Below are positions 17,210-56,600 of a DNA stretch of 64,000 bases, piece after piece. How positions within the stretch are numbered: position 1 is the first letter of the stretch; each line of letters starts with the position of its first letter. The DNA comes from Macrostomum lignano (taxonomy: Eukaryota). The translations under genes were made by a program, and so were the position numbers. The stretch covers positions 148,535-212,534 of the forward strand of contig NIVC01001491.1 in assembly GCA_002269645.1 (NCBI GenBank). Direction: 5' to 3'. The notes beneath the pieces were generated by a model. That model saw only the letters and a list, made by a program, of their open reading frames with translations, was not told the DNA's origin and made no database searches.

Positions 17210-17577
17210 TTTATTTATTTTTTTATTAGAGGCAGGGGGTTGTGTGCACCCTGGCGCACTTTAAGCGACATAGGCACACAACCGGCGAGAGGCATTACTG
17301 CCCATTCCGCCGACTCCCCTGAGCAGGCATACAAGCGCGCGGATACGTACGCAGGCACACACTCACACAGGAGTGTACAGCGGCCCTAACTTTATATTAT
17401 CGTTAGGCATGTACACTTCACTGCGCCTTGGGGGGTTGGCCCTCAAGGCCGTTAATTGTACGAGCAGAGCCAAGCCGAGATTCCAATTCAGCCCCAAATT
17501 AATGTGACTGCACTTGGAATCGAGCCTGGGTCGCTGGCACACCAGAGCAGCTGCGCTACCGCTGGGCTACGGCCCCC
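17210..17577 (-). mobile_element. tRNA-derived SINE family 2, young copy with 14-bp TSD
   Basis: Head GGGGCCGTAGCCCAGCGG...GGCTCGATTCC, A-rich tail, TSD TGATGCCAACCGTA at 17196-17209 and 17578-17591. Confidence 0.92.
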
Positions 17578-18424
17578 TGATGCCAACCGTAATTGATCAT
17601 AGAAACTTAGTGGGGTCAGTAAAAGTATTTGTATTGAGGCGGACAAATGCCTGAGGGCGATTCGCATCAGTCAGTTCAATCTAGGAGGCGGATGTTGTGA
17701 TTGGTGTAGAGATTACTCTGAAGTAGACGGAAGTTTGATGGGGCTTGGAGTTCCAGGGTGGAAATCAGTTTCACTCCAGCTCGCATGCATAAAAGCAATA
17801 AATCTTTGTTTGAAACTTTGCCTCATGCACTGACGCAACTCCATGTACGAGTACGAGCAGATGATGGAAATTTAAATGAAGCGCACTTGAAGCATTTCAC
17901 CACTTTTTAACTTCGCTCGCAGGAATGTTTTTTAACTTACCTTTTAAAAGTGACATTGTGTAAGCAAGCCAGTGATACCTTTTTTTCTGCGGCCCAGGTT
18001 ATCTCTGAAAACAGATGGGGTATTTGCTAGAAAAAAATTAGGGCGAAGCAGAGACTGTGGTAAATAAAATGCTTCAGAAAGCGGTGCAACCTTGTTTAGA
18101 AATTAGAGCGGAGAAGAGTTTGCAGAAGTGAAGAGTGACGAAATTTATATTTTTATCTGTGAGGTACTTTATTTTACATCTGTTTATTATTATTTTTATT
18201 TAGCAACCCTTGACCTTGAAGAGATAATTTCACCTTACAACCAACTTCCAGCTGCTACTTTTTGCCTTCTGAACTTTTAGTAAAGTTGCAGATGAGCAAT
18301 GCTTTTGGTTGTGCTCGTATTTGGTTTAACTTTCTCGTAGTTCTGTTAGCTAGCTAATTTCTCCACTAATTCAACTAATTTCATTCATAAATATGGAAGC
18401 TTTTCGGGAAGTTTCTATTCAATC

Positions 18425-20130
<1,706 letters not shown>

Positions 20131-33715: not shown

Positions 33716-36387
33716 TCAGGGTACAAAGCGACGCAGAATCTGCCTGAACGGCTCCTCAGGATGGCCTCTACCAGCGGCCGAGAACCTTCCAGTCGGTCGA
33801 AGGACGCCGCTAGGCGTGAGTATCGTCGAGTCGCCGTGCACCGCCTCTAGAAACGGTCGCTCCATCTCGTGTCCCAACTCTGTCGCTTTTAAATCGAATT
33901 CCTGACCAGATTTTACCGGCGGAGACACCTTCGGCGTCTTAGTCAACGAATTCAAGTTGTGAAGTCCTCGACGATTCAGTCTGTTGAAGGCGACACTGGC
34001 CACTTTTAAGTCGCCAGTGTCCAGAGCTTCGCGCAACTCGACAGCATCGGCAGCCGCGGAAGTTGACAGGGCAGCTCCGCGCGAGGAATCCGCCATCTCG
34101 GCGGCCATAGCGGAGAGCGCATCGAATCGCTGCCGCTGATGCTCCAGGGCATCGCGACAGTCGGCAAAGAGGCGACTCCACTGCTGTAGAGCCGACTGGC
34201 GCTGCTTGGCTGACTGGTTTGCCGACTCTGCCGCTCTAATTAAAGTGCTGGACTCCTCCTGAAAGAAAATTTGACAAGTTGACATGTAGAACATGAACAC
34301 TAATTGCAGCAATATCCGTTGTAAACCGTTGCTTTGTTAAAATTTGAGCGAAAAATGTTAGTTTTAGTTTTGGAACTTTAGTTTTATGTAATAATAATTA
34401 ATTACCTCGTGCACCTGCCCAAATAGGCAGATGTGCAACCGACAGCTCAGCCGCAGCTATTGCGCGGCGCATCTGAAGGCTGCGTACGGCTGTTCAGTCC
34501 AAGGACTGGGGGGGGGGGGGGGTCGCCACATGCACCCTCAATTACCCCAGCTAATGCTGGCACCCATTTTACAGCTGGGTGAACTGAAGCAATGCAGAGT
34601 TAAGTGCCTTGCTCAACGACACAAATTGTTCCGAGTGGGTTGAGAATCGAATCGAGGATCGACCTTTCAGTCGTGAGTTTCGACGCTGTAACCATTAGGC
34701 TACAACCCCTTTGTTGCAGTTTATTAATATTTGTTGTTACTTTGGTAAAACAATAGGAATCGGAAATCCTATTATAGTTTAGAATTTATAGCTTTGCATA
34801 CGAGTATAAGTAGCAAACTACGAGCATAAGGTATAAATACGGTATTCCACCCAAATAATTTTTATTGTCAAAGCTGTCAATCAGTTATAATTGTGTTCCC
34901 CGTGTAAAGTCAACAGATCATCAAGTACTCCTAAAAAGATATGTAAAGTCAGCTTAATGAAAGCCAATCTTAGATTCATGAAAGGTCTAGAAATGGAGGA
35001 TCAAGGCTGAAAGCATTGCAGCAAACCTGGGAGAAATCCGAATGACCATATTTTTTAAGGATTCAAAATGGTCTAGCGCTTATTAAGGTATTCAATCGCT
35101 GTTTATTAAAAAAGTGTTTGTTATGCTACTGATTGAGGGAAATACCAATGAAAGAAAACATACGGCTATTGATACGGATCGAACTGCTACAAACCGATGA
35201 CTACTTCTACCGATTGATCTGTTACAAACCAATGACTACTTCTACCGATTGATCTGCTACAAACCAATGACTACTTCTAGCGATTGATCTGCTACAAACC
35301 GATGACTAATTCTACCGATTGATCTGCTACAAACCAATGACTACTTCTAGCGATTGATCTGCTACAAACCGATGACTAATTCTACCGATTGATCTGCTAC
35401 AAACCGATGCCTACGTCTACCGATTGATCTGCTACAAACCAATGACTACTTCTAGCGATTGATCTGCTACAAACCGATGACTAATTCTACCGATTGATCT
35501 GCTACAAAACAATGACTACTTCTACCGATTGATCTGCTACAAACCGATGACTACTTCTACCGATTGATCTGCTACAAACCAATGACTACTTCTACCGATT
35601 GATCTGCTACAAATCAATGACTACTTTTATCGATTGATCTGCTACAAACCGATGCCTACATCTACCGATCGAGGACTACTAAATTTAAACAACTATAAAA
35701 GATTGAACGACCGTACAGCAATCATGCGCTTTCGTTAAACTAACTCTGAACGTTTTAACTTACGAAGTTACGATTATAACCCACCTTAAATCGCATCTGA
35801 TCGTTAGCGTAATGCATCTCGCACAGGTTCCGATCGCAGTGCTCGCACCTGGCAAATACCTGCTGCAGACAGGCACAGTTACCGGCACCCTCTCGAGCGT
35901 CGCATTTCGCGTGATGAAGCCACTGCTCCCGCCGACGCCAGCTGTCTACCACGCCGCGGACGTGAGGATTCTCCAGCGGACGATCGACCAGACGCTCGCG
36001 ACAAATCGGACAGCGGGCCACCTCGCCAGACGAGTGACATTTGGTTGCGATAGCCTGGTGACAGCCGCGGCACAGAGTGTGATGACGGCTGCACACGAAG
36101 CACGGATCAACGAAGGTGCTCAAGCACACTGGGCATTTCAGCTCCTCTTCGAGATCTTTGACTGCCGGAATCGAAACGTATTTTTGCATTTAAATAGACA
36201 GTTTCAAAACTTGAGCACTTTGCTCAGGTTTGTTGCGTTTTAAGATTGATTCAATTTGATCATAGTCTACCGTAATACCGAAAGACTTAATTGTTAAATG
36301 TCATGGGTTTGAATTTTTACAACAAAAAACTTTACAATGCAGAAACAACAACTTAGATAACTTACAGGTTCCACTTTCTGCAGACAT
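33716..36387 (-). CDS. TRIM-like gene 6
   Basis: Exons 36387-36366 (ATG...T|gtaagt), 36161-35785 (CPVC..DPCFVCSRHHTLCRGC..CPIC; CEHCDRNLCEMH) and 34258-33716; frames consistent. Confidence 0.85.
34388..34709 (-). mobile_element. SINE family 1 copy in intron 2 of gene 6
   Basis: Head GGGGTTGTAGCCTAATGGTTAC; body shared with the other copies. Confidence 0.85.
35178..35670. repeat. 35-bp minisatellite, about 14 units, in intron 2 of gene 6
   Basis: Unit CTGCTACAAACC(G/A)ATGACTA(C/A)TTCTA(C/G)CGATTGAT with alternating variants. Confidence 0.95.
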
Positions 36388-37161: not shown

Positions 37162-37539
37162 TTTTTTATTTTTTTTATTTTTTTTTTAGAGGCAGGGGGG
37201 TTGTGTGCACCCTGGCGCACTTTAAGCGACATAGGCACACAACCGGCGAGAGGCATTACTGCCCATTCCGCCGACTCCCCTGAGCAGGCACACAAGCGCG
37301 CGGATACGTACGCAGGCACACACTCACACAGGAGTGTACAGCGGCCCTAACTTTATATTATCGTTAGGCATGTACACTTCACTGCGCCTTGGGGGTTGGC
37401 TCTCAAGGCAGTTAATTGCACGAGCAGAGCCAAGCCGAGATTCCAATTCAGCCCCAAATTAATGTGACTGCACTTGGAATCGAGCCTGGGTCGCTGGCAC
37501 ACCAGAGCAGCTGCGCTACCGCTGGGCTACGGCCCCCTT
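37162..37539 (-). mobile_element. SINE family 2, young copy with 13-bp TSD
   Basis: TSD CATTATAGCGCAT at 37149-37161 and 37540-37552. Confidence 0.92.
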
Positions 37540-38085: not shown

Positions 38086-41230
<3,145 letters not shown>

Positions 41231-42104
41231 TTTTCAGTAAGAATTCTAATTGCAAAATTCATACAATGCGAAGAATCCGAGAAATAAAACTTAGAGGTAG
41301 AGCTTGCATGGTTCCTAGTTCTAAAGCGCGTTTAATGTAAAAAATCAGATTGTAAGTGCAATGTCTATTTATAGAGTAGCCAGTGCGTACGCTTCTAGTG
41401 TACAAAAGAACAGAATTCCAACGTACTTCTCGGCGTACAGTACGTACTCGTACAATGGGTATAGGTACAGCGTACGTTAGTCAGTGCATACTATTTCTCT
41501 TGCTCTTTCCCACGCAGCAATTTCAAATAAATATCCGTAAAACCAACTGCTGTCTTTCGCTTGGACACAACAACCTTTATAATTATAACCTACCATTCGA
41601 TCTACAAAATGAACGATTTTGGTTCAGGTAAGGTTGAAAGCAAGTTAATCCCCAAATTTAAGTAAAACAGGCCTGCTTTGAAGCTTTTTAAAATTTTTTA
41701 TGGAATTTCGATTCAAATTGAAACAATACGTGCGCCCGTTCTTGCATAGTTCTAATTAGGAGAGTAGCGGAGCTGGAATTAGTTTGAGGGTTCATCAACG
41801 CAAATTGGCCTGTCCAAAGCTGTCTTGCGATTCCCATGGCTTATGACGGCCAACCAAGTCTCAAGGGACAGGGTAAAGGTCGGGGATGCCCGACGATGGG
41901 AATAGCGGCGTTTTTGCGTCATTTATGTGTTTAGGGTTTTTTATTGAACCAAGCAAGATTAGCAGTTTAAATATTGAGGGTTTCATTGACACTATAGCAA
42001 AATGACAAAATAAAAAAGTGCATTTTGGTCATTTTTGTAGACTGTACTTGGTTTTGGTTGATTTTTTATACATGAGCCCAAAACCCAACGCCTGGCCCTC
42101 TGCA

Positions 42105-44151
42105 ATGAGCAAATCATCTCAAGGTTTCAATGTTGTTCCTATATTTTATACTTCTGATTTGCAGAGGTTGCTGAGGAGCTGCTATGCCCCGTGTGCTTGG
42201 ACCCCTACAACGACCCCGTATATGTGTGCATCCATCACCATAGCCTGTGCCGCGAATGCTACCAAATGATTGTTTCGACAGCTGGCAGTGACATCCCGCA
42301 GTGTCCGCAGTGCCGAGAGAAATTGACCAGACCCGTTGATAATACTCAACTGCGCCGTCTGGTGGAGGCTCACCAACAGCAATCTCAGCAGGCGGTCCAA
42401 TGCCAGGACTCTTCCTCTGGCGGCATCTGTGCTCGGCGTAGTGCTGAGCGATGCGGGCACTGCGAGCAGAGCTTCTGCGCGCAGCACTTCATCGCTCATA
42501 AAGAGCAGTTTCAAGTGCGTATGAAATTCACTGTTTCTTTATTGTTTTTTAAGGTTCTCGCTCTGAAGATTAATTTTTAGGTTCTTAAATGCGATCACTG
42601 ATTTCAGACCGATTGCGTTGAGCTTTTGTCGGCTGCAGATGAAGCAGCTCAGCAGTCAGAGAGTCGACAAAGAGTGCTAACCGAATGGGAAGTCTTTATT
42701 CAAAGCTGTGTAGCGCATCTGATTGAGAATTCGAGACTGCAGCGATTAATTCCCGAATCCTGGCTCGACGATGCATCCCGGAGGCACGCCGAAGATTTAC
42801 GAAGCACCCTCAACGCCGGTGACCTGCGGGCAGCCAGAGTTGCCTATGATGAACTCAGGATGGCCAAAGCGAGATTCGACCAGCAAGGACCGCCTCGCGA
42901 GATCGTTGGAGAGTTCAGCCGAGATGCGTTGTTCTCTCTGTTTCAAGAGAAGCTTTCAGCTCTGCTGACCGCAGCCGAACAGGTGTACCTTGACGGCATC
43001 TACGGCTTGGTCGAACGCGTTTGCCACATTGGAATTTCCACAGTCAAGCTGAAGATTGGGAAAGAGATTCAGAAAATTCCGGAGCTCAAATGCCGGCTTA
43101 GTTTCGTCCTGCCCGGTCGAGGCAGTCACTTCACTCCCTATGTTGACCTCAAAGCCATTCGTGCCGAGCAATTTGAAAGGGACATTCTGATTCGTTTCGA
43201 TTTCCAGCAGCAGTTCGACTACAGCACCATCAGTATGTCGAACGGTCCGGCCGTTTTAGCACAGTTTCTGCAGAGAGGACCGATTGAACTGCCGTTTTGT
43301 CTTCAGATGAAGTTTAAGGAGAGGCTGGCCTCCGGGGTGGCTGAAAATACCTACTGCAGCAGAATGTATCAACTCGCAGCTTTGCTGCCACTGGCGGAGG
43401 CGATCAGTCGTGGGGAGAGCATCGAAAACGTGGAGTGTCCTTGTGAGATTCTGAATAAGAAGTACACTTTAAATTACCTTTGTCTACTGAGTCATGACCC
43501 TGTTATTTAAACTACAAAAGCTTTTAGTGATAAAATGCACCAAAAACTCGCGAAACTAACTTTTCTGGTTTCTTAGAAAATATTTGGATTCTGGGCTTGC
43601 GCAAAAATGCAATGCTGTCAAGCTGAAATAGGAAATAGCTTCTCTTCAACACAAATGATAATAATATTCGTTTTTGTAGAAGCAGATTTATAGTAAACTT
43701 TTCTGCTGGTTAGATCAGAGGTATTTGGAAAGAGTACTTAATTGTTCAAAATCAATAGTTTTTTGCTTTATGAACTAATTAGATAGAAATTGACTTTTAC
43801 AACTGTAATGCGCATACAAAATCAAGGATTTACAGAAGTTGCCCTGTCTGTCTAATGAGTGTCTGACTGGTGGAACTTAACATTGAAAACGTGAGCTCCT
43901 AGCTCGACCGTAAAGACCAGCTGACGCAGTGCAATTAGCCAGTCGTTGGAAGCCGGTTCCGGCTTCTTCTGAGATTGAATCTCCAAGAATCAGCCTTAAT
44001 TGGTCTTCCCGCAGTGCTGGATGAAAATGAGGCACCTCGCGGATATGTCACGGTGTCCACCAACCTGCCGTGTCTGCTGAACCAAGTCTACCGGGAGCTG
44101 CCGGCTGAGGAGCAAAGCGAAGTTGAATTGAGGCTTCGAGGAGAAGAGTAA
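42105..44151 (+). CDS. TRIM-like gene 8: RING + B-box-like + coiled coil + RPGRIP1L-type RID (C2) domain, about 446 aa
   Basis: Exons 42105-42123 (alternative in-frame ATG 42072), 42165-42514, 42608-43442 and 44015-44151. C-terminal FDFQQQFDYS..LAQFLQRGPIELPF..LAEAISRGESIENVECP|LLDENEAPRGYVTVSTNLPCLLNQVYRELP aligns with the RID of RPGRIP1L in this window. Confidence 0.85.
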
Positions 44152-45480
44152 TTTCGTTCGTCCGAAGTCAAAATATGGTAAAATTGAAAGGTTAATTAGT
44201 TCGCTAACGATGAAAACTGGAAACTATGGCGTTGTCTGAACAGATTTTAAAAAACTTTTTTTGAACAGTAATTGTTTCTTCAAATATTACTCCAGTGGTT
44301 GTCTACATGTATATTTAAACAACTTCATACAATACTATCGCCGTAGTATTTCTGTTCTGACCTCAGTTGGTGCCTCAAAAGGCGTGACTACGCACTTCTT
44401 TCAAGCTCAGGAAGCAGGAAAATATTGGATTGCTATTAACTTTTCGCAAAAAATTTTTTGTTCAATTTTTATAGAAAATATTGGAAGAGATTATTTAGCT
44501 AGCCAGGAGTTTTACACATGATTCTTTTTGTCAAGAGTACGAGCGAATTATGCACTGTGCTCGTTTTGTGTTATAGATATTCTATTTACTCTAGAAAGTT
44601 TTTTAGGGTGGTTTGTAGCTCGTAGGTTTGGACGCACTCATCTTGACGTCGTCCGTTGTTAAATTTCAGCATCTTTCAGAGTCGTGTGGTGAGGAAAACA
44701 CACGCGTAGTGTCCTATTTAAGGCTTTAAATGATTTCTTTTCGAGTCATTGTATAATTATAACTTTAAACCAACTGGTTAATTAAGCGTCTTTTTCAATT
44801 GTTTGTCTCCAATTTTCGCAGTATTCACGCTCGTATTTAACTAAATGGAACGTATTACGAGCTAAAAAGCATATATATTTTGAATTATCGAAGTGCGTAT
44901 TTTTTTAACCTCAAAACTTATTAATCATGTGAAGAACAGTTTAGTTTCATAAAACGCTTTTTGGGGTATATACACGCTCAAAAAATCGCTTATTTTTAAG
45001 CAAAACAAAGAGTTCTTAAACAATTAATTACCCATAAAACTTTGTTTAAGTTACTTACGGGGATAAGGCATTTATTAAGGCACTTTATCAGATACCTCGT
45101 GCAGAATCAAACAGCTCAAAAGTTAAAGGCTGCATTATTCGACTCGAACTCACATGCAAACTAATCACAGACAAATATAACAAGAGTTATAAAGTGAAAA
45201 TCGATATGAATCCAGTATAATATGGAATTAAAAGTCAGGTGGTGAGTCACCTTTTGAGAGATGAAAGCATAAAATTAAGTCTTTCAGACTCAAAAAATAT
45301 CACTGCATTCCATACTCACTTTTAACGTGATGAAGCAGCCGTGGCAGGCTGGTTTCAATCGCGATGCTGCCAATCTTCTTCTCGTTTTGAATGACTGAAA
45401 TGAAAACGTTGATTGAATCTGGGGTGATTAACAGTAAAATACATTTTTTCTTTGTTGGATTGTGTTTTAAATGGTGTTTT

Positions 45481-45845
45481 TTTTATTAGATTAGAGGCAG
45501 GGGGGTTGTGTGCACCCTGGCGCACTTTAAGCGACATAGGCACACAACCGGCGAGAGGCATTACTGCCCATTCCGCCGACTCCCCTGAGCAGGCATACAA
45601 GCACGCGGATACGTACGCAGGCACACACTCACACAGGAGTGTACAGCGGCCCTAACTTTATATTAATCGTTAGGCATGTACACTTCACGGCGCCTTGGGG
45701 GGTTGGCTCTCAAGGCCGTTAATTGCACGAGCAGAGCCAAGCCGAGATTCCAATTCAGCCCCAAATTAATGTGACTGCACTTGGAATCGAGCCTGGGTCG
45801 CTGGCACACCAGAGCAGCTGCGCTACCGCTGGGCTACGGCCCCCG
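45481..45845 (-). mobile_element. SINE family 2, young copy with 14-bp TSD
   Basis: TSD TTAAATGGTGTTTT at 45467-45480 and 45846-45859. Confidence 0.92.
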
Positions 45846-46188: not shown

Positions 46189-49100
46189 TCATGCGTAGGT
46201 CAGAATTCGATGTAATGTATTAAATGTACAAATCTGCCCCGCAACATAGATGGACGTCGAAAACGTCTGCTGACCTAAATGACTTCAAATTGCAGACGGG
46301 AGAGAGAAATCTCTAAATCTCACGTGGAAACTCGTTCCAGATGCAGCGGTCCTGTTCGATACTGGGTTGCAGGCCGACTCTAGCCTCGCACAAGTCGCCG
46401 GCTGCCTTACAAGCCAGCGTGAATCGAAGCTCGACTGGATCAGCCAGTAGCAAGCTGGTTAGCTGCTTCCTCATTCCTTCTTCTGAGTAATCGAAGCGCC
46501 ATATATAGTCGAAGTTTAGGCGATAATCTCCAGGCTGAGACCACCCGGGTCTGGGGATGAGCACGCTGGGCGTGTGCGTATCCTCAGAGTCGTAATAGCC
46601 AGGTAGATTGAAGTAAACATAGCAGAATTGGTTGTTAAGTTTGGGATTTTCTAAGACCTCACTGTTCTCCATTAGATGCACAGTTGATATGGCGATGTCG
46701 CAGTGCCTCGAAACACTTTTCACTGTGAATGGTTTTTGTGTTTATGCTTTTTCTAGAATTTGAAGCGTTTACAAGGGTTAAAAGTCGAAAATACTTACTC
46801 CTATAATTCAGATGACTTCTGATGCTGATAGGTACAAATCTAAGTAGAGATTTTGGTAGCTCACGGCCGATCTCCAGTAGCAAGCTGGGCAAATCCGTGC
46901 TGATTTTGATGCTGCCCACCTGCTCGGTCCTCGCCATTACTAAAAGTTTTTGATAAAATTCATTACAAAATCCGAAATTCATATTTAGCGTTTTATGCAA
47001 AATCCAGAAAAAAGTAAGTTTACACGTACCAGGAAATCTCTTGTCTCTAACATTTTCGCCACGTCTTAAGTACTCATCGAGTTTTATAACAGACCTACCC
47101 AATTCAGTCTTAACGAAAGAGCTTGCCAAGTTTGGTGATTTGCAAAATACTTTGAACGCGATCTGCAGGTTTCCCTCGAGAATCGACTTGGCCAGCATCA
47201 GGCGGTTTTGGTAGTTGCCTGTCATGCTGTAGTCGTAAGTCTTTTCAAAATTGAAAGCAAGAAGGAACCCGTTTTTCGGAGATTGCACCGAATTCAGGAC
47301 TGGTCTCAAAAGAGACGTCATTGTTTCTTGAAGCTTGAAGCCGACTAGGTCAAATGCTACGTAGCACTTTCCCTTGCCAAGCTGTGAATTTGTCAAGACT
47401 TCAGATGAGCCGTTCAGTTGCACGTCAGCTATTCGCACAGTGCAGTTCTCAACGAAGGCTTCATCGAATTTGCGAATAGGCTGATTATTACCTGTAATCG
47501 AAAGGTACATGTCTGTCGTATCTATGGGAATGCATAGTTGTAAATATGAAGCCTCATTTATTTAATAGTTAAAATACAAGGATAGTTCGACATTGTCTCA
47601 CCCTCGGCTTCATTTTCCTCAGCAGTAGGTTTTTGGACGTCCTCAAACGAGTCTAACCGTTTCCTGATCGAAATTAGCAGACTCGGCAGGCTCATGCTGA
47701 TTTTGATGCTGCCAACTTTATTACCGTTTGACAGTACTAAAGATACAAGGGATACGTTTGTTGCGACAGCAATTCGGACACTATCAGCATGTGATGGTAA
47801 AAGCCACCTAGCTTTTTAACAGACAGTAGACAGTTTTTTAAACTCGTGAAACTTGACTGAAACCTGCATTGCTTGCATACTAGGAACTCAGATTAATGCC
47901 ATATGATTATCAATGCTATCATATAACACTGGGACTACTGAAACAAAGGGAAAACCACCGTTGGACTAGTTCCTGTTAATAATAGCTAAGAATTATATCA
48001 TTAAAAGTTATTCCTGTCTTTATTGTGCTACTCGGGTAAACGGATGACACATTTTGAGTCTCCCTAAGCCACCCACTGTCTATCTACCGATCGAAAAAAA
48101 CTCACGTGGAAAGCTTTGTTTTCGAATATCCTCGCCTCGAGCAACAAACTCGTCCATTTTGACAGTCGCCTTGCCAAGATCCATGTAGAATTCACTCTCT
48201 GAGTCGGACGGCTCGCAAGCTACCACGAACGGAATCTCGATGCACTTTCGTCTTAAAAGCAGCATAGTTAATATTTTGCTCTTGCTTGCGCTGCTGTAGT
48301 CGTAGACTCCTTGGAAATTGTAGCTGAGGCAGAACTCCTCAGGTCGCGACCTGCCCGGCCTGGGCGTCGGCACAGATCCAGGCGTTTCCGTCTCCTCGCT
48401 TCGGAAACCGGGTAGCGAGAAGAGCACGGAGCACTTGGTGTTGTCGAGTTCTGGCTTCCTCAAAACATCGCTTGTTTCACTGAGCTCCACATTGAATATC
48501 TGGACTTTACAGCTTTCCATAGTGAATGAAACTAAACCTAGTAGCTTTTTTAAGTCGTTCTAATTCTGTCTGGCATCGTTTAAATAGCAAGTTCGCAAAC
48601 TGCAACTTCAGCTGAACTTTGGAATCTAAGAGGGAAGGTGAAGTTCTTAGGTAAAAATTGTCCACCTTAATGAACTCCCACTTTCTCTGAGTAATTTGGG
48701 CTCTGGAATAATATTAGCAAAAAATGAAGTCAGAGATCTTCTACGTGCTGCAAAAGCCAATCTTCCTTTGTGCGAAAGAGAGTTAGAAATTGTCAGAAAA
48801 GTGGATGCGCTGCACACATCTTTGAGTACGTCATTGTGCATAATAAAATGGCAGCACTAAAATTAGCAGCTTACCCAAATGAAGTTCGCTTGATATTTTC
48901 TATTTATCTACCAAAATATAAAAATAAAAACGCTGAAACAATATCTAATTCATAATATAATCAGAATATAATTCTGAATTAGAAATAAAAACAAAAATTG
49001 CAAACTTATTCACTAAGAATCTACGATACACACACCGTAAAACATAACAAACGAGATTCTCTATAGATGTACATGTTAGTACAGGAAATTTAATTTAGAA

Positions 49101-51221
49101 ATAACCTGATGCATCAGTTACACAACCAATGAGCATATGCTTACATGTAAAGTTGAGCAAAATATTAGTAGCATGTACAGCTGATTCTAACGAGCGCACT
49201 GTTTTGATTTTAGCTCTCATAACTTTTTTAGCAGAATTTCAAACCACTTGGGCACTTTGAAATTGATAAGCTTTCTAGCTCTTTAAAAAAGTTATTGACT
49301 TTTTTTTACCCTCTGGTATTTCATCGCAGATTTCCCGCAGCAGACTGGGCAAGTTGGTGCTAATCGTGATGCTGCCAACAACTTCATCTCCGTTCAGTAC
49401 TGAAATAATAAAAAACGGCGTGTCTGGTGAACGACGCGTCTACTCGACATGTCCACTCAAAGCCCATTCTAATGACTTTTAAGCACGCACAAACATGAAA
49501 ACAATCATGAACTCATCAACTCAATCATGAAATTATCAACGCAATCATGAATCATCAACTCAATCATGATATCATCAACTCAATTATGAATCATCAATGT
49601 AATCATGAGATCATCAACTCAATCATGAATCATCAGCTCAATCAGGAAATAATCAACTCAATAACGAAATCATCAACTCAATTATGAATCATCAATGTAA
49701 TCATTAAATCATCAACTCAATCCATGAAATCATCAAGTCGATCATGAAATAATCAACTCAATCATGAAATTATCAACCAAAATCTTTAAATCATCATCTC
49801 ATTCATGAAATCATCAACTCGGTCATTAAACCATCAACTCAATCGTGAAATCATCAAATCAATCAATGAATCATCGACTCGATCATGAACTCCTGAACTC
49901 ATGAGTTTGATTATCATCAAAAGCGTGGATCATTCAAAATTAAGACCACAAAAGAACATCAAAAGTTAGTTAGGATAAAAAATTAAAGCGAATAAACTAC
50001 TCGTAATTAATTAACATGTCTTGAAAAAAACCTACACGGAAAGCTCTCGTCTTGAATGTCCTTGCCATCAGACACACGATCTTCGAGCTTGACGACCGCA
50101 GTGCCAAAATCCAAGAAGAACTCGCTGTCCTGATCCTCCGCCTCGCACACCAAGGTGAACGGAAGCTTAACTGGACTCGCCATTAACAGAGTGGCAAGCT
50201 GGATCCGCTTATTGTAATTTGTATCGTAGCTGTAGTCAAACCTCTTCTGGAAGTTAAACCGAAGATGGAAATCTTTTGCCTTGGTCCGGCCTGGTCTTGG
50301 CGTTGGTAGCGAGAGAGAAGTCTCCGTTTCATCCATATCAAAACCAGGTAGATCGAAGGACACAAAGCTGTTGGTGTTGTCGAGCTCGGGATTCTGTAGA
50401 GCTCGGGAAGATTGCTCTAGCTGGACACTCGATATACAAACTGTACACATCTCGCGCGAGTCTGCTTTAGAAGTCGACTGAGTCCTCCGACTGAGTGCTG
50501 AAGTTTGTTTCAGGTTTCAAACTCTTATTGAGAGTGTCTTTATGAGAAAATGACGAATAAATACAGAGTAAAATGGCAACAATAAAGCTTAAATTCTCAC
50601 AGTCTTTAATATGATCATCGGCAGCTGGATTCGTTTCTATGCAAACGGCGAGCAGTAAGCTGGGAATACTTGTGCTCAGTTTTATCGTGCCAACTTGCTC
50701 TTTGTAGTAGGAAAGCACTAAAATATAAAACATCCGATTGATAGTAGTTAAGGAATTGATTTCAATTTATTACCTACCGGTATTTTGTAAATATAACATT
50801 CTCAACCCGCACCAGGAAAGCTTTCCTTTTGGACGTCCTCCTTTCGAGCAATTCTATTATCGAGTCTGACAACGGCTCGGCCCAGATTAACTTCACTTTG
50901 CGATTCGTCCGGCAGGCACATCAAGGTAAAATTGACATCAGCATGATACCGGCTGAGCATATCATCCAGAGCCTGCCGCTTGCCCCTGCTCGAATAGTCG
51001 TATGAACTTTCGTAATCGAATTTCAAGACCAGATCCTGGCGTGTGGACGCTCCTGGTTTTCGGGTCGGCAGGATGGCGGGGGTCCTGGTGGCCTCCAGCT
51101 TATAGCCTGGCAGATCGAAAAGCACATAGAACTTTGAACTTCTCAGATTCAATCCTGCCAAATCAGGGCAAGTCTGGTCGAGCCGGACGCTGAATATTTT
51201 CACCACACAGCTTGATTCCAT
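46189..51221 (-). CDS. Poly-RID unit: five tandem RPGRIP1L-like RID domains, about 908 aa if spliced as one gene
   Basis: Exons 51221(ATG)-50813, 50717-50601, 50497-50036, 49399-49310, 48531-48106, 47736-47602, 47491-47030, 46939-46799, 46722-46324 and a tentative last exon 46274-46189. All introns are GT-AG phase 1 and I found no in-frame stop. Confidence 0.75.
49498..49920. repeat. Degenerate 19-20-bp tandem repeat (AATCATGAAATCATCAACTC)n in a poly-RID intron
   Basis: Direct reading. Confidence 0.85.
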
Positions 51222-52067
51222 GGCTCCGCTGTAAAATCCGTATAAAATCCATGTAAAATTCAGATATTATTAGGTTGATAAGAAAGTTCTCGCCGTTTCT
51301 AGAAAATTCCAGAAACTTTTTTTCCAGAATGTTCTGAATTACTGAATAACTTTGTTTGAATTACTTCGTTGAATAACTTTGTTGTTATACTCGTGAAATC
51401 TCGGTTTGTTGAAATGAAGAAAAAACGGCGAGAACTTTCTTATCAACCGGATATAATTATTATCAGTTGCTCTTTCTGCAAGCTTACCCAAATTGATGGT
51501 TCTTTACTATCAAGACTTGCAGTCAATATAATCGTACTTGCATATATGATTGCGAACTTATACACTGCTACAGAGAAATTCTGAAACTTTTTCTGCATTG
51601 TGGTTGGCTTTTTAGCGAGAGACAGTTTGCATTTTGAAAGACTCACAATTCGTTCCGATGGATGGACGTATGTACGAGTGAGCGCTCAGAAAGACTTACT
51701 CATGCATGATATGTGAGAGAACCATTTAATTTCGACAACTCTTACACTATTCATCACTGGTCTATTGTACGAGTACATTAAACTGCCTGCCAACTCTCTG
51801 AAATTAGCTATTATTGTGGAGTATGTGCGTACTTAGCATCCACATCTAGTCTGTCTGAGGTTTGCGTCCACTTTTTACAAAGCATTCTTTTATTAAAATG
51901 CGTCTAAACAGTCTCTAAGCGTAGCTTTCTGTATGCTAGAAAGACTACTGCACTCGTACATCCGTTTTAATAAGTTACATGTATTTAATTTTTCTCAAAA
52001 ATAGTGCATCGAACTCCTAAAGGACAGTTAATTGCTCGCTTTCTTATTTGAAAGTAAAATTCACTGC

Positions 52068-52415
52068 AGCCTAGTGGGTTGTAGCCTAGTGGGTTGTAGC
52101 CTAGTGGGTTGTAGCCTAGTGGGTTGTAGCCTAGTGGGTTGTAGCCTAGTGGGTTGTAGCCTAGTGGGTTGTAGCCTAGTGGGTTGTAGCCTAGTGGGTT
52201 GTAGCCTAGTGGGTTGTAGCCTAGTGGGTTGTAGCCTAGTGGGTTGTAGCCTAGTGGGTTGTAGCCTAGTGGGTTGTAGCCTAGTGGGTTGTAGCCTAGT
52301 GGGTTGTAGCCTAGTGGGTTGTAGCCTAGTGGGTTGTAGCCTAGTGGGTTGTAGCTTAGTGGGTTGTAGCCTAGTGGGTTGTAGCCTAGTGGGTTGTAGC
52401 CTAGTGGGTTGTAGC
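52068..52415. repeat. 15-bp minisatellite (GGGTTGTAGCCTAGT)n, about 23 units
   Basis: Direct reading; nearly perfect, one unit has CTT for CCT. Confidence 0.97.
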
Positions 52416-53606: not shown

Positions 53607-56600
53607 TTAGTTAACGAATCTGACGGCAGACTTTTTCGCGTCCGGGAGTTCGTTGTAGACCTCCAGTAGCAGGCTCGGCAGGTTCATGCTGATTTTGATG
53701 CTGCCCACTTGTTCATCGTTCAGCATTACTAAAATTGTTAGAAGACACATGGCATGATTAATGTGAGGTTTGGATTAGTCAAACTTATTTATTATTTACC
53801 AAATATTGAAAAAAATCTAAAATTACATATTACTACTAATGATAATAATTGATTACACCTGCCCAAAGGGTATTGCGTGGCGCATCTGAAGGCTGCGTAC
53901 GGCTGTTCAGTCCAAGGACTGGGGGGTCGCCAGACACCCTCAATTACCCCAGCTAACGCTGGCACCCTATTTACAGCTGGGTGAACTGAAGCAATGCAGA
54001 GTTGAGTGTCTTGCTCAAGGACACAAATTGTTCTGAGAGGGTCCAAAATCAAACAACCGACCTTTCAGTCGTTTGTCCAACGCTCTGTAACCACTAAGGC
54101 TACAACAAGTATTTGTGAAAATTTATTTCAAATAATCCTACTCGAGTTTTCACCCGAGTCAACTGGAACTCACGAGGAAAGATCTCTTCTCGAATGTCCT
54201 CGCCTTGAGCGATTCGATCGTCCAAATTGACCATCGTTTTGCCCAGATCCACGAAAAATTCGCTCTCTGGATCAGACGGCTCGCACACCACAGTAAACGG
54301 GATCTCAATACTCTTCTGTCCCAATAGCAGCATCGCCAGTACTTTGCGCTTCTCGTAGCTGCCGGCGAAACTGTAGTCGTAGACTCTCTGAAAGTTGTAA
54401 CTGAGGCAGAACTCATTGGGTCGGGACTGGCCGGGCCTGGGCGTCCAGAGAGACACTGGCGTCTCCGTCTCCTCCTGCGAGAAGCCAGGCAAGAGGAAGA
54501 ACACGTAGCACTTGGTGTCATCGAGGTCGGGATTTCTTAAAGCCTGGCAGGTCTCGCTAAATTGCACGTTGAATATCTGGACTGTGCAGGCTTCCATTGA
54601 AGCACGACCAGTAGCTGTCAGCATCAGCTGCTGGCGGAGCTCGTCCCCGTGGCTGCTCTCCGTCACCACGCCATCGGATTCCTCCGCCTCCGGTGCCGGA
54701 CGCTCTGTGTCCTCGTAGTCGTCCTCATACTCAACCTCCTCCACTTCGTCTTTCGGTTCCGCCTCGGCAACGTCGTAATTGTCGTCTCGCAGACTGACGG
54801 ATTGCTGATGCGAAGCGACGCCGCTTCTACCAACGCTTGGACCTGAAGAATTCGTGGAGTGTAGAATTCGCTTGGAGCTTGGAACTCTTGGTTTAGTCTT
54901 TATCTTCTGCAACCTGCTTATTCGTTTTTTAGACAAGCCCTGGGTCAGGGTCATTGACAATGCCGAACTCACCTAACGATGTATTTCTCACGTCCTGCGT
55001 ATCCGTGATGCTAGTTACGCTGTCGGTGACGGATGCTAAAGTGATGAAACCAGTTAGGAAAATTTTAGCAGCCTTGCTTTAGCCAGAAATAGTACTAACA
55101 GTAGGTTGATTAAACATGCATAGGCCTACCGTCCATGAGGGTGCTGACCCGAGTCTGGCTCGCCTGCGTATCGCCAGCGCCACCGCTGCCGCCGATGCCA
55201 AGCCGACGCTCTGCCGCGGCAGCGGCTAAAGCGGCGGCCGACGGCGCGTGCCGTTTCGGCGGTTGCGGCGTCTGAGACACCTGCGGCTGAATTTGGAGTT
55301 GGGATTCAAAAATACAGCTAGCTAAAAAATAAACTTCAGTAATTTTTTTATTATCTTGTCAACACTACCAACCTGATTGTCCCCAGTCAGAGATCCCGAC
55401 CGACTGCCAGTTCGTGCACTCGGTCGTGGCGACGACGATCCCGACGCTGAATTCGGTGCTACAGCCGACGCTGTTGGCGATGGACCATGGCTGCTTCCGC
55501 TGGCACTTCCTGTGCCTCGGCGCGGGGTTCTCGGCTGCTGAACTGGCTGTGGCTGCGGCTGCTGGGGCTGAGGTCGCTGCTGCGTGCTTCTCGCTGATCC
55601 GGTGTCGGATCCCAAGGCCACCGCCGCGCTGCGATCAAGAGTAGAGTCATACCCAGGTTCCCGACGGTGCTTCAACTGCGGCTTGTCTCTCAGCAGTTCA
55701 GCTTCGCCAGTCATCAGTGGCAGAGGCTCGGCAGGTCCGTCCCAATGACCAGCTGGATTGTACGCAAACTGCCAGCTGAGCTCAAGCTCCAGAGTGCCGT
55801 TCGGCTGCTGATCAGCTCCAAGTAGTTGGTAGATGCCCTGCACAGCCCGGTTCTGGCTTAAGGACACTAGATCGATCTACATGGGGATAGATAGGGGATT
55901 AGTAATGGGGTTAAATCGGTAAGAATAAGAATTTTTTGAGCCTTGAATATGCGAGAAATATGAAAAGTTTAATCATGGCTGTTAAAACGTGTCTAAATCC
56001 TTATTGAAAACAATGAATGACATCAAAGTCACCTTAGCAACGCCTAAGTAGGCGCTTTCAAGAGGATCGTCTTCGTCCAGCACCCAGACGACGAGCTTCT
56101 GCGTCTTCAAATAGCGATCCAACTCTGGGGTCGGCGTCAGAGTCAGCTGCTGGTAGAATTGGAACTCTGGATCGCTCGAGTTTGGGATGGCTGGTGAAAC
56201 AGTGTCCTCACAATCGAAGAACTTGTAGGAGCAGTACGGCGTCGGCTGGAAGTCCGGTCGGCGAGCTTTCAAGCCTCGACAGCGGACGATCTTCACGCCC
56301 AGAGTGTTGGCACCGCCGGCTGCGCGACGATTCTGCGCCAGGTCGTCGAGCGCTTTAAGGCCCTCCGCGGCCGCTTGGTGATTGGCCGACATGTAGCCAA
56401 GAGCCTTGGCGCGCTCCCGGTAGAGCCGCATCGCCTGCTCCATGGGCACCCGCATCCGCATCCAGTAGTCCAGGCAGCCCACCACCGTGCCTCCGTCCAC
56501 CGACACCAGCTGAGCTCGGCCGGACACCGGGGCGGTCGGTTTCGAGTCGAGCAGCTCGCGGAAGTAAAGTCGACAAGCGGCCACTTGGTGATAAGTGACG

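Follow-up and report, generated by a model that had tools for sequence, protein, structure and literature searches.

Free-standing RID cassettes in tandem beside RPGRIP1L in the flatworm Macrostomum lignano, with a RING-RID gene next door

In the ciliopathy proteins RPGRIP1 and RPGRIP1L, the RID domain is known as a lone, protein-binding C2 module at the C-terminus. We describe here a stretch of 64,000 nucleotides (nt) from the genome of the flatworm Macrostomum lignano (100% identical to the last 64 kb of contig NIVC01001491.1, assembly GCA_002269645.1, Mlig_3_7; hereafter the window, to which all coordinates refer), in which this domain has been copied as an exon cassette. An array of RID cassettes follows an RPGRIP1L homologue on the minus strand, in a lineage-specific, free-standing, multi-RID architecture with a RING-RID fusion gene next door. 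The first two copies make up an expressed, annotated gene under purifying selection (gene A, 51221–49275), whose product is a free di-RID protein of 370 amino acids (aa). That the remaining three copies form an adjacent, unannotated tri-RID gene (gene B, ~48520–46313) is the reading towards which, on a nearly even balance, we incline.

Comparisons covered four loci—the window and three homeologous contigs (L003, L004 and L005)—from an animal described as a hidden polyploid (PMC10468722). Gene models at NCBI derive from assembled transcripts (StringTie/TACO and a TBONE de novo assembly) with open reading frames (ORFs) called by TransDecoder, and spliced-leader and poly(A) reads served to delimit the annotated genes (PMC5730564). 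Splice sites were compared with the M. lignano donor motif GT[G/A]AG and spliced-leader acceptor motif [T/C]TNCAG (PMC8629364), and domains with the Pfam family RPGR1_C (PF18111; gathering score 22.9 bits). Protein searches comprised exact look-ups in a collection of 15 billion proteins and a HMMER profile search of 1.84 billion representatives. A word-indexed homologue search with a 908-aa conceptual product of the array as query returned two RPGRIP1L paralogs only, missing an existing 370-aa entry, and the same kind of search with a RID alignment as query gave zero matches.

The parent cassette ends the RPGRIP1L homologue BOX15_Mlig004133g2 (P0001; 1290 aa, partial), which lies on the minus strand at ~60658–53607, upstream of the array, and comprises coiled-coil exons, a C2-C2_1 domain (PF11618), a central C2 domain and a single C-terminal RID. 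With the protein mapped and the junction solved, the parent RID body exon occupies 54842–54174 on the minus strand (669 nt) and has phase-1 boundaries on either side; the RID itself lies at ~54609–54175 and matches RPGR1_C at 59.3 bits (parent unit) and the Protein Data Bank (PDB) chain 4QAM_B at E = 5e-7. The RPGRIP1L donor at 54973 is in phase 1. A terminal short exon (53728–53607, minus strand) codes for (L)MLNDEQVGSIKISMNLPSLLLEVYNELPDAKKSAVRFVN and then a stop, reading ..VGSIKISMNLPSLLLEVYNELPDAKKSAVRFVN before the stop and closing on the C-terminal tail LPDAKKSAVRFVN. The last RPGRIP1L intron also holds one copy (53871–54106) of an older dispersed repeat (82–85% identity) found again at 34458–34706 and 1400–1536. 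In the RPGRIP1L paralog P0002 (Mlig024872; L002 = NIVC01003397.1, 14966–16758) the RID body falls into two separated blocks, and no RID array was found downstream of that locus.

The initial annotation had taken the array for five RID cassettes beside RPGRIP1L, joined through phase-1 junctions into one open frame and kept by selection as a free protein of about 908 aa, a putative multivalent scaffold or decoy. Its exon structure was reproduced throughout by script: ten minus-strand exons between 51221 and 46189 are flanked by AG and GT, meet in phase 1 at every junction and remain open over 908 codons, the start codon lying at 51221 and the stop at 46189, with a first exon of 409 nt and internal exons of 117, 462, 90, 426, 135, 462, 141 and 399 nt (the fourth and ninth exons of the chain being 49399–49310, 90 nt, and 46722–46324, 399 nt). 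The junction peptide it had proposed, HLNYRMKSVSR, is contained in the conceptual 908-aa chain. That each body exon is open is improbable by chance: after mononucleotide shuffling a fraction of 5e-5 to 2e-3 stays open, and in the real exons either alternative frame holds 2–12 stops. An antisense gene under the array was rejected because plus-strand ORFs there are all ≤71 aa.

All five bodies are homologous, and units 1–4 score 31.9, 45.7, 43.7 and 37.9 bits against RPGR1_C, above the Pfam threshold in every case. Unit 5 has no Pfam match at E ≤ 0.01; it is nonetheless homologous to the parent RID (tblastn E = 5e-18) and aligns well with the other copies. It has no VGSI..LPSLL short exon and hence no terminal strand and helix, for which reason the array is counted as four complete cassettes and one truncated or degenerate fifth; the earlier count of five thus stood for the bodies and fell short for the last cassette. 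Unit 2, the one unit modelled, was folded with AlphaFold2 from a 15-row RID alignment and gave a predicted local distance difference test (pLDDT) score of 93.9. Its best PDB match is the crystal structure 4QAM_B, the RID of RPGRIP1 (E = 8e-14, TM-score 0.78), the remaining matches listed being nearly all other C2 domains at TM-score ≤ 0.52. In this model, the last beta-strand and helix of the RID are supplied by the short exon. The array thus shares its family with the RPGRIP1/RPGRIP1L RID (units 1–4) and its fold (unit 2), with ~22% identity to the human RID when unit 2 is compared, and it shares with the neighbouring RPGRIP1L RID the two-exon structure and the phase-1 intron. The 908-aa and 370-aa products match PF18111 only and lack the architecture of an RPGRIP1L orthologue; the proteins of the array are RID family members, not RPGRIP1L orthologues.

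Gene A covers copies 1 and 2. NCBI places at 51221–49275 a gene for a 370-aa protein (PAA67347.1 = BOX15_Mlig026271g1 = UniProt A0A267F2E4, 'RPGRIP1 C-terminal domain-containing protein'), and splicing of 51221–50813, 50717–50601, 50497–50036 and 49399–49275 yields a product identical to it. Exon 1 (51221–50813, minus strand, as are the others) is the body of copy 1, its start codon being the Met of the ME(S/A)C motif, an internal residue in the ancestor; exon 2 (50717–50601), the short exon of copy 1, encodes VGTIKLSTSIPSLLL, has gained a GTGAG donor and matches PAA67347.1; exon 3 (50497–50036), the copy 2 body covered by the Pfam match and the AlphaFold2 model, matches it too; and exon 4 (49399–49275) runs through the copy 2 short exon to the ancestral stop (..LPSLLREICDEIPEGKKKSITFLKS and stop), the annotated end of the coding sequence. 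Because a transcript-based model uses exactly these junctions, introns 1–3 of the chain are confirmed. Three further 370-aa homeologs exist (BOX15_Mlig026271 g1–g4 in all), and an older independent model, A0A1I8J8Y7 (331 aa), keeps the start and stop of gene A and skips the 117-nt short exon of copy 1. The earlier proposal of a free protein made of joined cassettes is therefore borne out at 370 aa, with its first three introns exact, but not as a single 908-aa product, the models stopping at 49275.

What separates these two products is a putative donor, G/GTAAAA at 49310/49309, inside exon 4 of gene A. The annotated model reads past it for 11 more codons (EIPE/GKKKSITFLKS), reaching a stop 35 nt beyond and ending in ..EIPEGKKKSITFLKS. 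Homology links this tail with that of the parent and with other M. lignano RID tails, and its stop falls within one codon of the parent's; it is the ancestral C-terminus, retained in position. At the other end of the gene, the acceptor that the initial annotation had placed 7 nt before GCC-ATG-G is present (51230–51222, minus strand; ttttacag/CGGAGCC ATG G, ahead of the copy 1 ATG). Its TTACAG agrees with the acceptor motif of the M. lignano spliced leader, which makes it a candidate trans-splice site; gene A may thus be trans-spliced, perhaps out of a transcript that also includes RPGRIP1L. Two minisatellites border or interrupt the gene. One, nearly perfect, lies between RPGRIP1L and gene A at 52068–52415 (23 copies of the 15-base-pair (bp) unit AGCCTAGTGGGTTGT), yields a spurious (CSLVG)n ORF and is longer in L005; the other, in intron 3 (49502–49901), consists of ~20 copies of the 20-bp unit CAATCATGAAATCATCAACT and varies in length among the homeologous loci (114–320 gap columns).

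The whole locus recurs on the three further contigs at 94–98.6% identity, L003 and L004 being identical over nearly all of the region. All 18 splice dinucleotides of the 908-codon chain are conserved among the four loci, and the chain is open in the window and in L005 (910 codons). In L003 and L004 the copy 4 body exon has lost one base 27 nt from its start (CGCAAA[T]TCG, ~47464), and this 1-bp deletion brings stops from codon 566 onwards; the initial annotation had itself named stops in other alleles as grounds for giving up its reading, and here they are. The same exon has an in-frame 6-bp indel near its 3' end that separates the other three loci from the window, and the remaining body-exon indels are multiples of three. 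One interval between copies 2 and 3 (48532–49309, 778 nt) shows 0.6–1.3% divergence among homeologs and no indels, against 3–10% in neighbouring introns, which could reflect function as a 3' untranslated region or promoter, or a recent gene-conversion tract.

Substitutions among the homeologs divide the array unevenly. Copies 1–2, open in 4/4 loci, show 18 synonymous and 11 nonsynonymous changes (omega ~0.18, P = 5.6e-6), and the stops, frameshifts and equal rates of a dead duplicate are absent from them. Copies 3–5 show 11 synonymous and 18 nonsynonymous changes (omega ~0.47, P = 0.04); the contrast between the two groups is not significant (Fisher P = 0.11). Between paralogous copies, the proportion of synonymous differences (pS) is 0.64–0.89, that is, saturated, and the proportion of nonsynonymous differences (pN) 0.19–0.55, in every pair including copies 4 and 5. 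Since synonymous sites are saturated, the tandem expansion is old, and since untranslated sequences of such age would be full of stops, the copies have probably long been translated. We argue from these rates, the open frames and the in-phase splice sites that copies 3–5 have long been coding exons and that constraint on them has weakened recently. The selection on the frame claimed earlier accordingly receives firm backing in copies 1–2 and across paralogs, but less in the recent history of copies 3–5. Exons also diverge less than most introns, a weak contrast confounded by minisatellite- and indel-rich introns.

As predicted, gene B would take in copies 3, 4 and 5 on the minus strand. Its exon 1 (48531–48106, unannotated) is the copy 3 body, with an ATG at 48520 in the ME(S)C position that matches the annotated start of gene A; exon 2 (47736–47602), the short exon of copy 3, encodes VGSIKISMSLPSLL, ends at a GTGAG donor and shows zero differences among the four loci; exon 3 (47491–47030) is the copy 4 body; exon 4 (46939–46799) is the copy 4 short exon, with a GTAAGT donor; and the last coding exon (46722–46313) is the truncated copy 5 body. 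The predicted introns measure 369, 110, 90 and 76 nt. In its short exon copy 4 retains the ancestral tail ..KSLLRFV and has lost the stop, ten extra codons leading to the perfect GTAAGT donor. Donors of short exons 1, 3 and 4 fit GT[G/A]AG, the first being confirmed by annotation. Copy 5 lacks a start codon, as the junction (A/TG) makes the Met in ..NYR-M-KSVSR, and its long-term openness therefore implies splicing to an upstream phase-1 exon. Should splicing bypass the donor at 46324, copy 5 reads ..NEFPREI to a stop at 46315–46313. The terminal exon proposed beyond that donor (46274–46189, minus strand, 28 codons) holds no RID motif and carries frame-changing 1-bp indels that vary from one homeologous locus to another; for both reasons it is probably noncoding, and this end of the earlier model finds no support.

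Several observations tell against a gene B of this kind. Copies 3–5 are without a gene model in all four loci, and a look-up of the contiguous ORF of copy 3 among called genes found no record; no matching protein in the profile search contains copies 3–5, and exact look-up did not find the 908-, 545- or 197-aa (copy 3) products in the 15-billion-protein collection. The acceptor before copy 3 (gtttag) departs from the spliced-leader acceptor motif, copy 4 is frameshifted in two loci, omega for copies 3–5 is barely below neutral, and copy 5 has neither its short exon nor a Pfam match. Most of these would equally be expected if gene A alone were functional and copies 3–5 were once-coding, now unexpressed relics decaying after a recent genome duplication, an explanation that the empty record in two annotations and the unconserved frame of the terminal exon also suit, and which we regard as unlikely though a serious contender. 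It has to accommodate three open bodies with pN well below pS at saturated synonymous sites, all ten gene B splice dinucleotides intact in four loci, a chain fully open in the window and in L005 with the other indels in frame, and exons less diverged than most introns, as far as intron repeats allow that comparison. Annotation is, moreover, uneven among the loci: the RING-RID gene is unannotated in L004, so that a missing model for copies 3–5 is weak evidence.

A further point against dividing the array into two genes is that the G/GTAAAA at 49310 is a possible donor, real M. lignano introns often being non-consensus (annotated ones use GTGCG, GTAGG and GTTGG donors too); its weak match to the consensus, once an argument against it, was dropped on that account. 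Were it used, at least in an isoform, the five cassettes would form one 908-aa penta-RID protein, with phase-1 GT/AG junctions throughout, a frame open in the window and L005, and an interval from 49309 to 48532 that is unusually conserved among homeologs; the skipping of exon 2 in the 331-aa model points to flexible use of such symmetric exons. We nevertheless rate this protein as improbable, because it requires a donor that is read through in every available model: all five (four of 370 aa from NCBI, one of 331 aa from UniProt) stop at 49275, and TransDecoder would presumably have preferred the longer ORF had it been in the assembled transcripts. The copy 2 tail beyond the donor, moreover, keeps its homology to the parent tail and its stop, two loci carry the frameshift, and the 908-aa sequence is absent from the protein collection. 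Splicing from RPGRIP1L into the array is formally possible as well, since the donor at 54973 agrees in phase (1) with the parent RID exon and with the acceptor of each of the five body exons, that ahead of the copy 1 ATG among them, and could reach any of these acceptors to swap or add RIDs as alternative 3' ends. We hold this to be highly improbable: RPGRIP1L models finish at their own RID and stop, gene A is separate in two annotations and starts at an ATG, and the 2.4-kb gap between the two genes contains the minisatellite and several AATAAA/ATTAAA signals.

Under the two-gene reading, the array would have arisen by a Macrostomum-specific tandem expansion of the two-exon cassette that ends RPGRIP1L, namely a body exon for a C2-type beta-sandwich, already in phase 1 at both ends in the ancestor, and a short exon that encodes the final strand and a helix. 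Cassettes would have been joined into genes as short exons lost their stops and gained donors, which could then splice to the phase-1 acceptors before the next body. Gene B would have been coding for most of its history and would now be under weaker constraint and broken in one homeolog pair; its predicted tri-RID protein would measure ~545 aa or slightly less, with an incomplete last domain. In a neighbour-joining tree, copy 3 stands beside the RID of the neighbouring RPGRIP1L (66–67% aa identity) and is the copy closest to the parent, copy 2 stands beside the RID of P0002 (54% aa identity), and copies 1, 4 and 5 branch deeper, as does the RING-RID copy, all inside a Macrostomum clade. The RID has been described as a C2 domain of type II whose ligand is RPGR, through its RCC1-like domain, and neither Ca2+ nor lipid (PMC4519163). 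RID-only proteins have none of the coiled-coil and C2 parts of RPGRIP1L, so multi-RID proteins would bind the RID partner (the RCC1-like domain of RPGR or a flatworm equivalent) away from the RPGRIP1L scaffold and might serve either as adaptors of two or three valences or as its competitors. That the array proteins bind such a partner and have a ciliary role is something we purely infer, which weighs on the functional side of this reading.

Known RIDs are single and C-terminal, following coiled coils and C2 domains, whereas those of the array are free-standing and tandem, with two, and probably three, per protein. In the profile search, more than one full-length RID match was found in the M. 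lignano di-RID protein only. Gene A is already in the databases as an unnamed hypothetical protein (A0A267F2E4 and A0A1I8J8Y7), whereas copies 3–5 are in no entry, and a search of literature and supplements for Mlig026271, Mlig004133 and Mlig013276 found no paper that mentions these genes. A parallel is a set of proteins with B-box and RID in Mytilus edulis, labelled 'RPGRIP1L' (such as CAG2186541.1; 241–255 aa; P0018 and P0031–P0034), in which the RID is likewise detached and multiplied and has a zinc-finger partner resembling that of the M. lignano RING-RID neighbour. Each of these has one RID, from a different RID clade, in contrast to the several per protein in M. lignano, and the mussel case looks like an independent expansion. 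Several copies of these small mussel proteins exist, some under adjacent accession numbers on one contig.

Short isoforms and fragments of vertebrate RPGRIP1 also bear a RID without the N-terminal scaffold, and the processing of RPGRIP1 is reportedly the subject announced in one paper's title. A single gene gives rise to those forms through splicing or proteolysis, each with one RID, whereas in M. lignano separate genes carry several.

The convergent neighbour of the array, BOX15_Mlig013276g2 (PAA67346.1, 446 aa), lies on the plus strand at 41609–44151. Its protein has an N-terminal RING-type zinc finger (weak Pfam matches, below cut-offs), a second Cys/His cluster, a coiled-coil-like stretch and a RID. 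This RID is a seventh, very diverged cassette, whose body ends at 43442 and whose short exon lies at ~44015–44148 (..VTVSTNLPCLL..), with a phase-1 intron at the same position before the short exon. Because PAA67346.1 keeps a diverged cassette with this intron, the cassette was captured by an E3-ligase-type gene too. Near this gene lies an (AACT)n microsatellite of ~278 units (40000–41111), which explains the low GC content and strong skew there. A dispersed repeat of ~365 bp, probably a young mobile element, is present in three copies at 97–98% identity (45477–45844, 17214–17577 and 37186–37537), and ARAGORN finds no tRNA inside it. Elsewhere, 18001–20000 has a GC content of 0.27 and a GC skew of -0.70, probably from another simple repeat; scans of the window found neither a tRNA nor an Rfam family.

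The value of these findings lies chiefly in domain evolution and in genome annotation, the latter because the present gene set lacks three of the cassettes; they have no direct bearing on a long-standing open question. The array offers a clean natural case of new genes made from a symmetric-phase exon through stop loss and donor gain, and its products would be natural RID-only reagents for finding RID partners in a genetically tractable flatworm. It is conceivable, though a long shot, that the di-RID protein, its tri-RID counterpart (or else a penta-RID isoform made with the donor at 49310) and the RING E3-type RID protein form a toolkit of detached RIDs around RPGRIP1L that jointly regulates a RID partner, be it RPGR or another transition-zone protein. 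If so, it would provide for multivalent capture of that partner, competition with RPGRIP1L and targeted ubiquitination, and would amount to a lineage-specific regulatory layer on the ciliary gate of an animal covered with motile cilia.

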